From Macrostomum hystrix (Eukaryota; Animalia; Platyhelminthes): 64,000 bases of DNA. The position numbers and the translations under genes are program-made. The notes under the pieces were generated by a model that saw only the letters and a program-made list of their open reading frames with translations, made no database searches and was not told where the DNA came from. The stretch covers positions 19,468,001 through 19,532,000 of the forward strand of contig CATNEN010000039.1 in NCBI GenBank assembly GCA_950097015.1, written 5' to 3'. Positions 51,868 to 56,843 of this stretch are shown here, piece by piece (position 1 is the stretch's first letter; each line of letters begins with the position of its first letter).

Positions 51868-52285
51868 GGTGAGGTGGGGTAGATTGTACGCTGATTGGCT
51901 GGCGAGGAACTATGGGGTGGGGGTAGATTGTACGCTTATTGGCTGGCGAGGAACTATGGGGTGGGGGTAGATTGTACGCTTATTGGCTGGCGAGGAACTA
52001 TGGGGTGGGGGTAGATTGTATGCTTATTGGCTGGCGAAGAACTATGGGGTGGGGGTAGATTGTACGCTTATTGGCTGGCGAAGAACTATGGGGTGGGGGT
52101 AGATTGTACGCTTATTGGCTGGCGAGGAACTATGGGGTGGGGGTAGATTGTACGCTTATTGGCTGGCGAAGAACTATGGGGTGGGGGTAGATTGTACGCT
52201 TATTGGCTGGCGAAGAACTATGGGGTGGGGGTAGATTGTACGCTTATTGGCTGGCGAGGAACTGCCGGTTGTGGGGTTGATTGTA
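51868..52285 (+). repeat. 44-bp minisatellite (GGCGAGGAACTATGGGGTGGGGGTAGATTGTACGCTTATTGGCT)n
   Basis: Directly visible; 3' of SELENOW. Confidence 0.95.
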
Positions 52286-52468
52286 CTTACACACTGTCAT
52301 GAGCCCAGTTTCCAAGAAATGAAAAAAATATAAAAAACACTGACCAAGTTGCATTTAAATTTTTATATTAGAAAAAATGATACCAGAAGACACTAATTAA
52401 ATATAGTCACATAATAAACCATTCGATATTCAATTCGCACTAAGCGGGAAACACACTCAATTGATTGG

Positions 52469-52572
52469 CAGCGAAGCCATTTGAATGGCGCTTCGGGACA
52501 ACGGACCAGCCCCCAGCCTTATAAAGGTATTGGAGAGAAGCTTTACTGGTCCGGCCGTCATAAGAATCGCTG
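52469..52572 (-). promoter_or_regulatory. SECIS element in the SELENOW 3'UTR
   Basis: Minus strand: helix I CAGCGA/TCGCTG; AUGA at 52561-52558; 12 nt (GGCCGGACCAGT) between UGAC and an unpaired AAA (52544-52542); 3' arm GCTGGTCCG pairs with CGGACCAGT; CGAA with the GA at 52494-52493. Lies ~110 nt after the stop codon. Confidence 0.8.
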
Positions 52573-52681
52573 GATCTAATCAATGAGATAGTTTCCAACC
52601 TTCATGCAACTATGTACTAAATATACTAGAAGATGTAACTAATAATTGTGGAGTCACATTTTTGAGTTCTGAAGGCGGCGC

Positions 52682-55623
52682 CTAGCCTTTGGCGGCTTTC
52701 AGCACGGCGTCCGCCACCTTCTGGCAGTCAGCGGCGGCTGGAAATTTGCCAGTGCTCAGCTTGGAGAACACCTGGCTGCCGTTCACAAACACCTCGAACT
52801 TGGACGTGGCCGTAGGCGTAGCCTCAGACGTGATGTCCGTCTGGTCACCCGAGCCGCCCAGCAGGTCCAGCAGCTCCTCTTTGAAGCGCCGAAACCTGGA
52901 GGCGTATCCTCAGGCACCGCTGGCGGCAGATTTGGGAAGATGTGGATAAATGTAAAAATGGCAATTGGCAGGGCGATTTGGGTAAACAGATGGTGGGAAA
53001 GAGAGGATCTGAGAGGGTCGGGAGAATGGGAGAGAATGTGAGAGGGTGGGGAGAATCGGAGAGGATGTGGGAGGGTGGGGAGAATCTGAGAGGATGTGGG
53101 AGGGTGGGGAGAATGGGAGAGGATGTGGGAGGGTGGGGAGAATCGGAGAGGATGTGAGAGGGTGGGAAGAATCGGAGAGGATGTGAGAGGGTGGAGAGAA
53201 TCGGAGAGGATGTGAGAGTGTGGGGAGAATGGGAGAGGATCTGAGAGGGTGGGGAGAATCGGAGAGGATGTGAGAGGGTGGGGAGAATGGGATATGATCT
53301 GAGAGGGTGGGGAGAATCGGAGAGGATCTGAAAGGGGCGGGAGAATGGGAGAGGATGTGAGAGGGTGGGGAGAATGGGAGAGGATGTGGGAGGGTGGGGA
53401 GAATCGGAGAGGATGTGAGAGGGTGGGAAGAATCGGAGAGGATGTGAGAGGGTGGGGAGAATCGGAGAGGATGTGAGAGGGTGGGGAGAATGGGAGAGGA
53501 TCTGAGAGGGTGGGGAGAATCGGAGAGGATGTGAGAGGGTGGGGAGAATGGGAGATGATCTGAGAGGGTGGGGAGAATCGGAGAGGATCTGAAAGGGGCG
53601 GGAGAATGGGAGAGGATGTGAGAGGGTGGGGAGAATGGGAGAGGATGTGGGAGGGTGGGGAGAATCGGAGAGGATGTGGGAGGGTGGGGAGAATCGGAGA
53701 GGATGTGAGAGGGTGGGGAGAATCGGAGAGGATGTGAGAGGGTGGGGAGAATGGGAGAGGATGTGGGAGGGTGGGGAGAATCGGAGAGGATGTGAGAGGG
53801 TGGGGAGAATCGGAGAGGATGTGAGAGGGTGGGGAGAATGGGAGAGGATCTGAGAGGGTGGGGAAAATGGGAGAGGATCTGAGAGGGTCGGGAGAATGGG
53901 AGAGGATGTGAGAGGGTGGGGAGAATGGGAGAGGATGTGGGAGGGTGGGGAGAATCGGAGAGGATGTGAGAGGGTGGGGAGAATGGGAGAGGATCTGAGA
54001 GGGTGGGGAGAATGGGAGAGGATCTGAGAGGGTGGGGAGAATCGGAGAGGATCTGAGAGGGTCGGGAGAATGGGAGAGGATGTGAGAGGGTGGGGAGAAT
54101 GGGAGAGGATGTGGGAGGGTGGGGAGAATCGGAGAGGATGTGAGAGGGTGGGAAGAATCGGAGAGGATGTGAGAGGGTGGGGAGAATCGGAGAGGATGTG
54201 AGAGGGTGGGGAGAATCGGAGAGGATGTGAGAGGGTGGGGAGAATGGGAGAGGATCTGAGAGGGTGGGGAGAATGGGAGAGGATCTGAGAGGGTGGGGAG
54301 AATCGGAGAGGATCTGAGAGGGTCGGGAGAATGGGAGAGGATGTGAGAGGGTGGGGAGAATCGGAGAGGATGTGGGAGGGTGGGGAGAATCGGAGAGGAT
54401 GTGAGAGGGTGGGAAGAATCGGAGAGGATGTGAGAGGGTGGGGAGAATCGGAGAGGATGTGAGAGGGTGGGGAGAATCGGAGAGGATGTGAGAGGGTGGG
54501 GAGAATCGGAGAGGATCTGAGAGGGTGGGGAAAATGGGAGAGGATCTGAGAGGGTCGGGAGAATGGGAGAGGATGTGAGAGGGTGGGGAGAATGGGAGAG
54601 GATGTGGGAGGGTGGGGAGAATCGGAGAGGATGTGAGAGGGTGGGGAGAATGGGAGAGGATCTGAGAGGGTGGGGAGAATGGGAGAGGATGTGAGAGGGT
54701 GGGGAGAATCGGAGAGGATCTGAGAGGGTCGGGAGAATGGGAGAGGATGTGAGAGGGTGGGGAGAATGGGAGAGGATGTGGGAGGGTGGGGAGAATCGGA
54801 GAGGATGTGAGAGGGTGGGGAGAATCGGAGAGGATGTGGGAGGGTGGGGAGAATCGGAGAGGATGTGAGAGGGTGGGAAGAATCGGAGAGGATGTGAGAG
54901 GGTGGGGAGAATCGGAGAGGATGTGAGAGGGTGGGGAGAATCGGAGAGGATGTGAGAGGGTGGGGAGAATCGGAGAGGATCTGAGAGGGTGGGGAAAATG
55001 GGAGAGGATCTGAGAGGGTCGGGAGAATGGGAGAGGATGTGAGAGGGTGGGGAGAATGGGAGAGGATGTGGGAGGGTGGGGAGAATCGGAGAGGATGTGA
55101 GAGGGTGGGGAGAATGGGAGAGGATCTGAGAGGGTGGGGAGAATGGGAGAGGATCTGAGAGGGTGGGGAGAATCGGAGAGGATCTGAGAGGGTCGGGAGA
55201 ATGGGAGAGGATGTGAGAGGGTGGGGAGAATGGGAGAGGATGTGGGAGGGTGGGGAGAATCGGAGAGGATGTGAGAGGGTGGGGAGAATCGGAGAGGATG
55301 TGGGAGGGTGGGGAGAATCGGAGAGGATGTGAGAGGGTGGGAAGAATCGGAGAGGATGTGGGAGGGTGGGGAGAATCGGAGAGGATGTGAGAGGGTGGGG
55401 AGAATGGGAGAGGATCTGAGAGGGTGGGGAGAATGGGAGAGGATCTGTGAGGGTGGGGAGAATCGGAGAGGATTGAGAGGGTGGGGAGAATCGGAGAGGA
55501 TCTGAGAGGGTGGGGAGAATGGGAGAGGATCTGTGAGGGTGGGGAGAATCACACTAGTCATCAGATGAAACAACTATCAGAAATTGAGTCTCACCAGTAG
55601 ATAACGTGAACCTTAACAACCAT
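52682..55623 (-). CDS. SELENOW: Selenoprotein W (Rdx family), 88 aa, 2 exons, in-frame UGA = Sec13
   Basis: Exon 1 55623-55595 (ATG GTT GTT AAG GTT CAC GTT ATC TAC TG|gtgaga), exon 2 52919-52682 (ccgccag|C GGT GCC TGA GGA TAC..TAG). Protein MVVKVHVIYCGAUGYASRFRRFKEELLDLLGGSGDQTDITSEATPTATSKFEVFVNGSQVFSKLSTGKFPAAADCQKVADAVLKAAKG; YCGAUGY and FEVxVNGxxxFSK are Rdx/SelW hallmarks. UGA at 52912-52910. Confidence 0.93.
53000..55549 (+). repeat. 29-bp minisatellite (GTGAGAGGGTGGGGAGAATCGGAGAGGAT)n filling the SELENOW intron
   Basis: Directly visible; ~2.55 kb of a 2675-nt intron. Confidence 0.97.
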
Positions 55624-56054
55624 TACAGAGTTTTATGTTTTCACTTAGAGTCTGATAAGTCAGTAGAGCTTGAGCTGGAATAGCCCTTGAGCTGGAATGC
55701 AATGCATGTGTTTTGAAACAAAAACAGAATTTAAAATGAAGCATTTTAGACCTACTGAAAATAAGCAAAGAGAGCTTTAGCTAGAGCAGCACTAGCTTAG
55801 TTGGCCCCTCGCCTTCTCGCCATTAAATGTTTTATTTTGCAGTGTAACTTCAAAACAGAAATCGGAAACTGTAGCTCGGCAAATCTATATTATGTGAAAC
55901 TAAATGAATTGTGAGCAACTAGTAACATGAGCCGCTTATCAGGGTAAAAAGAGGCGTCGCGAAATGAAAATACAGACATGGATTGACAGTGCTGATGTAA
56001 ACTATGCACTTGCTATATTATTCTTAGAAAATTAGACACGAGGCGAGAATCTAC

Positions 56055-56380
56055 ACTGATTGGCTGGCGAGGAATTGACTGGGGTGGATGGGGTTTAATG
56101 ATTGCTGATTGGCTGACTGGCCAGGCATTGTCTGGGGTGGGGTTGCATAGAGTGTAAGCTGATTGGCTGGCGAGGAATGGACTGGGGTGGATGGGGTTTA
56201 ATGATTGCTGAATGGCTGACTGGCCAGGCATTGTCTGGGGTGGGGTTGCATAGAGTGTAAGCTGATTGGCTAGCGAGGAATTGACTGGGGTGGATGGGGT
56301 TTAATGATTGCTGATTGGCTGGCTGGCCAGCCATTGTCTGGGGTGGGGTTGCATAGAGTGTAAGCTGATTGGCTGGCGAG
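56055..56380 (+). repeat. 103-bp tandem repeat, ~3.2 copies, rich in CCAAT (minus strand) and GGGTGG motifs
   Basis: GATTGGCT(G/A)GCGAG recurs at 56058, 56161, 56264 and 56367. Confidence 0.9.
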
Positions 56381-56843
56381 TGATATTTGATGTGGGTGGT
56401 GTAGAATTTAAGCTCATTAGACTATTCTCGTTAGTGAATTTGTTCTATATTTTCTATATACATTTTCATATTTAGACGAACATAAGTTTAAATAAAACAG
56501 TATACAAACTAAAAAGGAATGTCACAAAACAATTTAGACGGGAAAAATGCGAAAGCAACTCTAAATAAGGGATAATTAACTTCAAGGGCTTGTTAAATAG
56601 TACCAAGCTACCGCGAGACTACACAAAGGTTCAGAAAAAGAAATTGGACAATTAATTGAGATGCTATGTTGAAGACTTGCAAAGTATGCTTTGTAACAAA
56701 ATCACAACACAGACAGTAGAGACTACAGCACTTCACAGAAATAAGGTCATAGATGGAAAATATTATAAAAACTGGGTTATTAGATGTATACTCGTGTAAG
56801 TGTAAATAAAATCGATTGTCAATTTGAATCGGACAGACAAAAT

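Follow-up and report, generated by a model that had tools for sequence, protein, structure and literature searches.

A two-exon selenoprotein W gene with a candidate SECIS element in the flatworm Macrostomum hystrix

Selenoprotein W (SelW) is a small selenium-containing redox protein. Vertebrate SELENOW (mouse structure 2NPB) comprises about 87-88 amino acids, with an N-terminal beta-strand of the form V-x-V-x-Y followed by the motif C10-G-A-U13-G-Y, in which selenocysteine (Sec) is encoded by UGA together with a SECIS element in the 3'UTR. Among the flatworms, three SelW1 and three SelW2 genes are recorded for Schmidtea mediterranea and two SelW genes for Schistosoma japonicum (PMC3828610). 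The surveyed genes form a multi-copy family in free-living flatworms, are built of a short first coding exon, a splice site common to the family and a Sec-bearing exon, and are typically overlooked by standard gene finders (PMC3828610). Macrostomum was outside this survey, and the paper on the M. hystrix assembly makes no mention of selenoproteins (PMC10468722). The SelW family as such is already well known, as is the failure of ORF finders on genes with UGA-encoded Sec.

Here we describe a locus on the minus strand of a 64,000-nt stretch of M. hystrix DNA (the window; contig CATNEN010000039.1, positions 19,468,001 to 19,532,000, assembly GCA_950097015.1), for which a selenoprotein W gene had been predicted from the sequence alone. 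The locus is a real, expressed two-exon selenoprotein W gene, and its coordinates within the window are confirmed (Table 1); on the contig (C39) the coding region corresponds to 19520682-19523623. That it is a functional gene of the SELENOW type, with UGA13 read as Sec and a type II SECIS element in the 3'UTR, is considered very likely.

Table 1. Features of the M. hystrix SelW locus (positions within the window)
Feature	Position	Strand	Remarks
5'UTR	55624..55715	(-)	approximate, inferred; upstream limit could take in another exon or a spliced leader
Coding exon 1	55595..55623	(-)	29 nt; ATG + 8 codons (MVVKVHVIY) + TG; donor CTG|gtgaga
Intron	52920..55594	(-)	2,675 nt; GT..AG; phase 2, within the Cys10 codon; absent from the contigs of runs X1, X2 and X6
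Minisatellite	53001..55550	(.)	29-bp unit, 88 copies, 93% match; fills most of the intron
Coding part of exon 2	52682..52919	(-)	C, G11, A12, Sec13 (TGA), 75 Rdx-domain codons, TAG
In-frame TGA	52910..52912	(-)	taken as the Sec13 codon of CGAU
3'UTR, minimum extent	52234..52681	(-)	contigs cover 52290-52681, plus 50-57 letters past 52290
Candidate type II SECIS	52493..52561	(-)	AUGA 52561-58, unpaired AAA 52544-42, helix 3, C-GA-A 52495-92

The predicted joining of a very short first exon to C GGT GCC TGA GGA TAC can be read at the positions given. The Cys10 codon takes its first two bases from the TG that closes exon 1 and its third from the C that opens exon 2, behind the acceptor ..ccgccag|C at 52920/52919, giving YCGA-TGA-GY across the junction. 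The count of sense codons after the TGA (GYASRF...AAKG) agrees with the predicted 75, the TAG stop being located at 52684-52682, and the protein comprises 9 + 1 + 78 = 88 residues with AAKG at the C-terminus.

With vertebrate SELENOW the gene shares this length, the N-terminal strand, the CxxU motif C10-G-A-U13-G-Y (Sec by in-frame TGA, with the junction within the motif seen in cDNA contigs), an Rdx region alignable over residues 14-80 and the motif T-x-x-F-E-V; its SECIS is a candidate. It differs in its weak sequence similarity (phmmer E 0.052), in its two coding exons, in a C at the first KGAW position of the UGAN/KGAW SECIS core, and in the C-terminal half, which reads FSKLSTGKFPAAAD as against HSKKRGDGYVD in mouse SelW. 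The exon design of the surveyed flatworm genes, as described in the survey, recurs in M. hystrix, whereas the 2.5-kb minisatellite held by its intron sets the gene apart (PMC3828610).

Intron-less contigs from three runs of two studies (X1 and X2 of P1, X6 of P3) contain the splice junction 55595|52919, which the original prediction had named as a test; these are all the runs with coverage of the junction, and each assembled the spliced mRNA. The contigs align to 52290-52920 and continue with the reverse complement of exon 1; 111-120 letters lie beyond the junction, 28 of them coding in exon 1, and the first 30 match 55596-55625. Alignment was to 52290-53000, a stretch chosen to end before the minisatellite, so that the junction shows as a loose end with the sequence of exon 1 instead of a listed joint. 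The runs consist of assembled contigs, in part only presumed to derive from RNA, and carry no junction counts or transcript ends. No intron-less or processed copy is found in the 220-Mb assembly, in which exon 2 and the UTR are present once; a processed retrocopy therefore cannot account for the intron-less contigs and is ruled out as their source.

Searches were run separately for each exon of the spliced model and, at the protein level, for the pieces before and after the TGA; the motif itself was read from the sequence. The piece behind the Sec codon alone matches the Pfam family Rdx (PF10262) with 31 bits against a cut-off of 22.6 (E 3.1e-7, profile positions 11-67 of 74) and the NCBIfam family SelT/SelW/SelH (TIGR02174) with 40.2 bits against a curated cut-off of 34.2; both matches start at profile positions 10-11. 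GC3 in the frame behind the TGA is 0.80, as against 0.38 for the GC content of the 3'UTR; neither of the other two frames is open. With the curated cut-offs passed, this GC3 contrast and the closed alternative frames, the frame is coding beyond chance.

These observations bear on the possibility that the locus is a transcribed but decaying copy, in which UGA13 would terminate translation after 12 residues and the frame downstream would be a relic. Such decay could be suspected from the imperfect candidate SECIS, from the fact that we infer Sec insertion at UGA13, and from the three other SelW-like Sec genes of the genome, which could cover the function. The 75-codon frame is intact and recognized by two curated families, the contigs of the runs differ at just two coding positions, both synonymously, and assembly of the spliced mRNA from every run covering the junction would not be expected if it were subject to nonsense-mediated decay. 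We regard a decaying copy as extremely improbable, and the original reading as a real selenoprotein W is supported by the splice contigs, the Rdx and TIGR02174 matches and the Sec machinery described below.

Within the Rdx superfamily, a position on another branch (SelW2/MIEN1-like, SelH, SelT or SelV) was weighed against SelW proper. The lowest E-value among PDB entries belongs to human MIEN1 (2LJK; E 0.0043), ahead of SelW, and the resolution of the Pfam and NCBIfam models stops at the level of SelT/SelW/SelH. MIEN1, or SelW2-like proteins in general, shares the Rdx fold and matches well locally, the motif FE(V/I)xxNGxxVFSKLxxGxFP included, but this match is confined to residues 25-62, whereas the alignment with mouse SelW runs end to end, from query 1-69 to chain residues 14-80, and so starts directly after Sec13. 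Proteins of the MIEN1 type have a C-terminal CaaX prenylation box, as does the MIEN1-like Sec gene of M. hystrix (L008, with CALL), which is a separate locus; the protein described here ends in AAKG and carries the CGAU motif of the SelW type. It is a small single-domain protein that lacks a signal peptide, an extension at the N-terminus and a CaaX tail, and it matches SelW in its YCGAUGY motif, in having Sec as residue 13 and in its length of 88 amino acids. On sequence grounds, placement on one of the other branches appears very improbable.

The only named homologue, 'selenoprotein W' of Elysia marginata, shares 43% identity. Unnamed homologues in public collections start with MVKVHVIYCGA(TGA)GYASKF, an N-terminus resembling exon 1 that is also seen in homologue P0010 (MVKVHVIYCGA); unnamed representatives of 86-88 amino acids carry YCGA/GW-GY, where W is TGA read as Trp. 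Motif, length and the one match named 'selenoprotein W' support a probable assignment to SelW1. No protein of the SelW locus itself was found in the public protein collections searched.

Of the Sec machinery, which the prediction had named as a test, the genome contains a tRNA-Sec (78.5 bits, anticodon TCA), SepSecS in three exons, and SelD. Further genes with in-frame TGA are two GPx genes, Sep15 (L016) and the three additional SelW-like genes, the latter with the common acceptor ..cag|C GGN NNN TGA. Two of the SelW-like genes, L009 and L010, are a tandem pair on contig C34. Identity to L009 behind the Sec codon is 46%, and L009 exon 1 (MGKVKVHVVY+TG|gtaag) repeats the design and the intron position of the gene studied, but the first intron of L009 is shorter than 1 kb. 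For L010 the predicted stop codon is likewise TGA, which fits the standard code.

A SECIS-like hairpin had been announced about 110 nt behind the stop codon. It is located there, starting 120 nt past the stop, and inspection by hand finds the AUGA, a helix 2 of 12 bp, the unpaired AAA, a type II shape and the GA (52494-93), but the stem is bulged: helix 2 has bulges of 1 nt and 2 nt on its 3' strand, which amount to three extra bases near the core. At the 3' core position a C stands in place of the G or U of the published KGAW consensus. The constrained fold reaches -21.5 kcal/mol, comparable to the -23.5 and -28.4 kcal/mol of the paralogues; in the minimum-energy fold without constraints, the GA of AUGA is base-paired and not free for a kink-turn.

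Model-based searches did not pick up the hairpin. Rfam cmscan over 52000-56000 and 52440-52620 found no SECIS family at E<=10, a result that was set aside as evidence against a SECIS since the clean elements of L009 and Sep15 were missed at equal search size. A covariance model (R1) built from the SECIS elements of L008, L009 and L010 missed the candidate both in a search of the entire window and with the filters disabled, aligning to the AUGACG motif only, and it did find the Sep15 element (15.2 bits). Genome-wide it recovers its own three training elements only and is therefore too specific. A second model (R2), in which Sep15 was added to the set, likewise missed the candidate and aligned in the 3'UTR to AUGACG only (4.5 bits). 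Both are small ad hoc models, and MAFFT gave no structural alignment of the SECIS elements. In shuffled sequence, a pattern-plus-energy scan, poorly selective and used for the chance rate only, yielded between 1 and 7 comparable candidates per 128 kb; the hairpin alone is therefore worth only p ~0.01-0.03 for a UTR of 450 nt.

The locus could then be a real selenoprotein gene whose SECIS is not the hairpin 52561-52493 but lies elsewhere, for example beyond the 44-bp tandem array (51876-52286) that the 3'UTR enters. The silence of Rfam, R1 and R2, the bulges of helix 2 near the core, and the contigs that pass 52290 into the array, so that the 3'UTR may be longer, are all compatible with such an arrangement. 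The minus strand between 50000 and 52681 contains no second AUGA..AA..GA candidate with a stable stem, and the ATGA sites at +76 and +381 after the stop were rejected as they lack a complementary 3' strand. Like the L009 and L010 elements, the candidate starts with AUGACG, has its AAA at a spacing of 13 nt, takes a type II shape and carries CGA on the 3' side, and Rfam is equally blind to the clean elements. An element elsewhere is judged quite improbable, and the hairpin in the 3'UTR is retained as the candidate SECIS. Helix 2 of the L009 and L010 elements is uninterrupted, with 7-9 bp directly above the core, unlike the bulged helix of the gene studied. If the candidate is fully active, the C-GA core of this gene and of the tandem pair, together with the helix 2 that in this gene is bent by bulges, would represent a lineage-specific relaxation of what SBP2 accepts, a possibility that we regard as doubtful, and this class of SECIS would be under-called by standard models (Rfam, possibly SECISearch3).

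The intron is filled with repeats, as predicted, and 82% of its bases are pyrimidines on the transcript strand. There are 25 CTCAG sites that could act as decoy acceptors. The long ORF of 887 amino acids that had been called spurious is present (52910..55573, minus strand) and ends on the Sec TGA; it consists of minisatellite repeats that read through without a stop, and its region is bypassed in the cDNA contigs. A repeat-filled intron has here given rise to a long false ORF, and ORF finders overlook the gene because its Sec codon resembles a stop. Two annotation traps coincide at one gene: Sec is encoded by UGA, and the first coding exon, of 29 nt, sits behind a repeat-filled intron. It is plausible that automatic annotation has overlooked the gene.

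In the scheme proposed here, the 2,675-nt minisatellite intron, which is rich in pyrimidines and interrupts the Cys10 codon, is removed from the pre-mRNA, as documented by the contigs. The resulting mRNA would be translated into the 88-residue product of about 9.4 kDa, MVVKVHVIY-C-G-A-U-G-Y..., with UGA13 decoded as selenocysteine by tRNA-Sec and the eukaryotic Sec machinery, presumably under the direction of the type II SECIS about 350 nt past the UGA. By analogy with SelW and from what is known of the family, the product would be a small thioredoxin-like CxxU redox protein.

The understanding of selenoproteins is unchanged by the M. hystrix SelW gene. The genome of M. hystrix gains one delimited selenoprotein gene for which the exon coordinates, the Sec codon and a candidate SECIS are given. 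This gene and the three further SelW-like Sec genes indicate that a basal free-living flatworm retains a multi-copy SelW family, like the planarian Schmidtea.

The candidate on the minus strand is very probably a functional SelW-type selenoprotein gene. Its two coding exons, the junction between them, the in-frame TGA and the terminal TAG were re-read in the sequence and lie exactly where the original prediction had placed them. The deduced 88-residue product carries the motif C10-G-A-U13, a numbering identical to that of mouse selenoprotein W (SelW). Coordinates of the gene, its candidate SECIS and related loci are shown in the table.

Features of the SelW-type gene and related loci (positions in the window, or in the M. 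hystrix assembly G000 where a contig label C is given)
Feature	Location	Strand	Description
Coding exon 1	ATG at 55623	minus	29 nt, ATG GTT GTT AAG GTT CAC GTT ATC TAC TG, then gtgaga
Acceptor and exon 2 start	2,675 nt on	minus	...atctgccgccag, then C GGT GCC TGA GGA TAC
Post-TGA frame	TAG 52684-52682	minus	75 codons, GYASRFRRFKEELLDLLGGSGDQTDITSEATPTATSKFEVFVNGSQVFSKLSTGKFPAAADCQKVADAVLKAAKG, ending in TAG
Hairpin, 5' part	AUGA 52561-58	minus	AUGA, C, helix 2 strand GGCCGGACCAGU, unpaired AAAGCUUCU
Hairpin, 3' part	C-GA-A 52495-92	minus	helix 3 (5+4 bp, 3-nt loop), return strand GCUGGUCCG-UU-G-U-CC, C-GA-A
L008	C1:9979709-9982894, Rdx match 9981209-9981394	minus	Rdx selenoprotein gene, in-frame TGA
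L009	C34:3948081-3948275	minus	SelW-type Sec gene, tandem pair with L010, ~4 kb apart
L010	C34:3944189-3944374	minus	SelW-type Sec gene, tandem pair with L009
L012	C10:2554474-2554683	+	Rdx-like match, no TGA before match
L013	C37:4227127-4227315	minus	Rdx-like match, no TGA before match
L014	C39:2500576-2500845	+	GPx, one in-frame TGA
L015	C2:2359743-2360012	+	GPx, one in-frame TGA
L016	C34:2495815-2496039	minus	Sep15/SelM, one in-frame TGA

The GT..AG intron has a pyrimidine share of 82% on the transcript strand and contains a minisatellite (53001-55550, 29-bp unit, 88 copies, 93% match). One frame of this repeat lacks stop codons, which accounts for the 887-aa mechanical ORF call (52910..55573) that stops at the Sec TGA and was rightly regarded as spurious in the original prediction. 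Minus-strand intron 52920-55594 contains CTCAG 25 times, always after a pyrimidine tract, and these sites are potential decoy 3' splice sites; despite them the acceptor at 52920 is the sole one used in the assembled contigs. The 64-kb window is unusually minisatellite-dense, with more than 30 separate arrays (units 10-100 bp, several arrays 1-2.5 kb long), so that the intronic array is a property of the genome and not of the gene. Tandem arrays also lie on both sides of the gene, at 51876-52286 and 56056-56399, with units of 44 bp and 103 bp. Both contain the 16-mer ATTGGCTGGCGAGGAA, for which 13 of 14 matches (≤2 mismatches) fall inside the two arrays, 0.03 being expected; its form on the gene's strand, ..CCAGCCAAT.., is CCAAT-box-like.

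Assembled contigs of four public runs were aligned to 52290-53000, the minisatellite being left out of the target. One contig each from X1, X2 (both study P1) and X6 (study P3) aligns from 52290 to 52920 and continues with 111-120 letters unlike the intron. The first 30 of these, AGTAGATAACGTGAACCTTAACAACCATTA (+ strand), correspond in reverse complement to TAATGGTTGTTAAGGTTCACGTTATCTACT, i.e. exon 1 and two 5'UTR bases; positions 52920 and 55595 are both G, hence the one-base overlap at the junction. Exon 2 with the UTR has a single match in the whole assembly, its own locus, hence no processed retrocopy stands behind the intron-less contigs and they derive from spliced RNA, bearing out the predicted junction from 55595 to 52919. 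The contigs overrun 52290 by 50-57 letters, which implies a 3'UTR of some 450 nt or more that reaches into the 44-bp tandem array; this downstream array (51876-52286) is at least partly within the 3'UTR.

Exon pieces on either side of the TGA were searched separately, and family matches were obtained with the 75-residue post-TGA piece only. It matches Pfam Rdx (PF10262; E 3.1e-7, 31 bits vs a cut-off of 22.6) over profile positions 11-67 of 74 (exon 1 and CGAU would account for the first 10), and NCBIfam TIGR02174 (SelT/SelW/SelH) with 40.2 bits vs a cut-off of 34.2. In a search of solved structures, mouse SelW (2NPB) aligns end-to-end (query 1-69 to chain 14-80), starting immediately past Sec13, with an E of only 0.052, whereas MIEN1 scores better (E 0.0043) but locally, over residues 25-62 only. 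Membership of the gene in another Rdx branch is quite unlikely. A decaying copy, in which the UGA simply terminates translation, is very unlikely; the frame past the TGA is intact and conserved, GC3 is 0.80 in it vs a GC of 0.38 in the 3'UTR, and the remaining two frames of this stretch are closed. The X6 contig shows no differences from the window, and the two coding differences that X1, X2 and X5 (sediment metatranscriptome) have in common, at 52697 and 52703, are third-position and synonymous.

A word-indexed protein search delivered one named relative, 'selenoprotein W [Elysia marginata]' (43% identity), with an unrelated N-terminus where the CxxU exon belongs; this N-terminus looks mis-modelled. 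Exhaustive HMMER search added unnamed 86-88-aa proteins encoded on contigs of ENA, Logan and JGI, with the N-termini MVKVHVIYCGAWGYASKF, MTVVVKVIYCGAWGYSARY and MVKVKIHVEYCGGWGYAPKY, in which W is TGA read as Trp. The MVKVHVIYCGAWGYASKF homologue agrees almost residue for residue with exon 1 (MVVKVHVIY), with the split Cys and with GA-TGA-GYASRF, and so independently supports the 29-nt exon. The homologue entries P0001, P0005, P0007, P0010 and P0011 are mis-modelled; several of these are metagenome or transcriptome predictions with W at the Sec position, and P0005 extends ~75 residues beyond the usual C-terminus.

The M. hystrix assembly comprises 220,453,370 bases in 42 contigs (Table 1, PMC10468722). 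The check for Sec machinery was positive: tRNA-Sec is present (78.5 bits; ARAGORN call tRNA-SeC, anticodon TCA), as are a three-exon SepSecS gene and a SelD/SPS gene. In the three SelW-like paralogues L008, L009 and L010 the Rdx match starts right past the TGA, in the context ..cag/C GGN NNN TGA. In L008 (..cacagTGGCAGCGGA-TGA-GGATAC) the spacing ahead of the Sec could be CGU or C-GSG-U, according to which acceptor is used; the gene has a MIEN1/SelW2-like design with CALL, a CaaX-like tail, at the C-terminus, and its SECIS, a canonical AUGA..UGA element, lies 352 nt past the stop. L009 and L010 have the motifs CGAU-GY and CGSU-FY and a clean type II SECIS each, with a CGA core; L009 shares the first-exon design of the gene (MGKVKVHVVY+TG/gtaag, 869 nt upstream). 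The predicted stop of L010 is TGA, which fits the standard code with Sec as an exception. No SECIS was found for the two GPx genes within the retrieved loci. L012 is part of an open frame of 296 aa in which there seems to be a second Rdx-like stretch (..VWVNGQLIYSLW..), and both L012 and L013 are possible Rdx homologues of the Cys or non-redox type.

The SECIS is the weakest link of the selenoprotein case. A SECIS-like hairpin past the stop had been predicted and is present, starting 120 nt past the stop codon, with an architecture like that of L009 and L010: AUGACG at the start, a spacing of exactly 13 nt before AAA, type II shape and a 3'-side CGA. The Sep15 element (L016), 451 nt past the match, similarly has AUGAC, 13 nt and an A-run, then UGA. 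Constrained folding (core kept open, first pair above the core imposed) gives the hairpin -21.5 kcal/mol, 12 pairs and 1-nt and 2-nt bulges in its 3' strand (L009 -28.4, L010 -23.5 kcal/mol). Against it count the C at the K position of the core consensus UGAN/KGAW (PMC3753652), near-core insertions and a bent helix 2, both of which SECISearch3 penalises (PMC3753652), and the pairing of the GA of AUGA in the unconstrained minimum-energy fold. No SECIS family was reported by Rfam in the gene region, and the hairpin went unrecognised by covariance models built from other elements (R1 from L008, L009 and L010; R2 with Sep15 added). These negatives are low-powered, because Rfam on 181-nt stretches also missed the clean L009 and Sep15 SECIS and R1 recovered only its own training set genome-wide. 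In shuffled sequence a pattern-plus-energy scan gave 1-7 candidates of a comparable kind per 128 kb, so that the hairpin alone is worth roughly p 0.01-0.03 at such a UTR size. Run contigs have no variants inside the hairpin, which is not significant with only 8 UTR differences. A functional SECIS elsewhere is unlikely, and none of the remaining ATGA sites of the known UTR is matched by a 3' strand; the hairpin at 52561-52493 is probably the gene's SECIS. Judged by sequence, its C-GA core and bent helix 2 would be the only mildly unusual feature of the gene.

UGA13 would be decoded as Sec under the direction of the hairpin, and the product would function as a thioredoxin-like redox protein with a CxxU motif, the role proposed for SelW. 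SelW occurs widely. Six SelW genes are present in the free-living planarian Schmidtea mediterranea, and a splice site separating a short first coding exon from the Sec exon is a feature of the family (PMC3828610); misannotation of selenoproteins is the reason for tools such as Seblastian (PMC3753652). The M. hystrix gene adds to the known SelW family, its intron position and its likely misannotation both being of a kind already known for SelW or selenoproteins (PMC3828610, PMC3753652).
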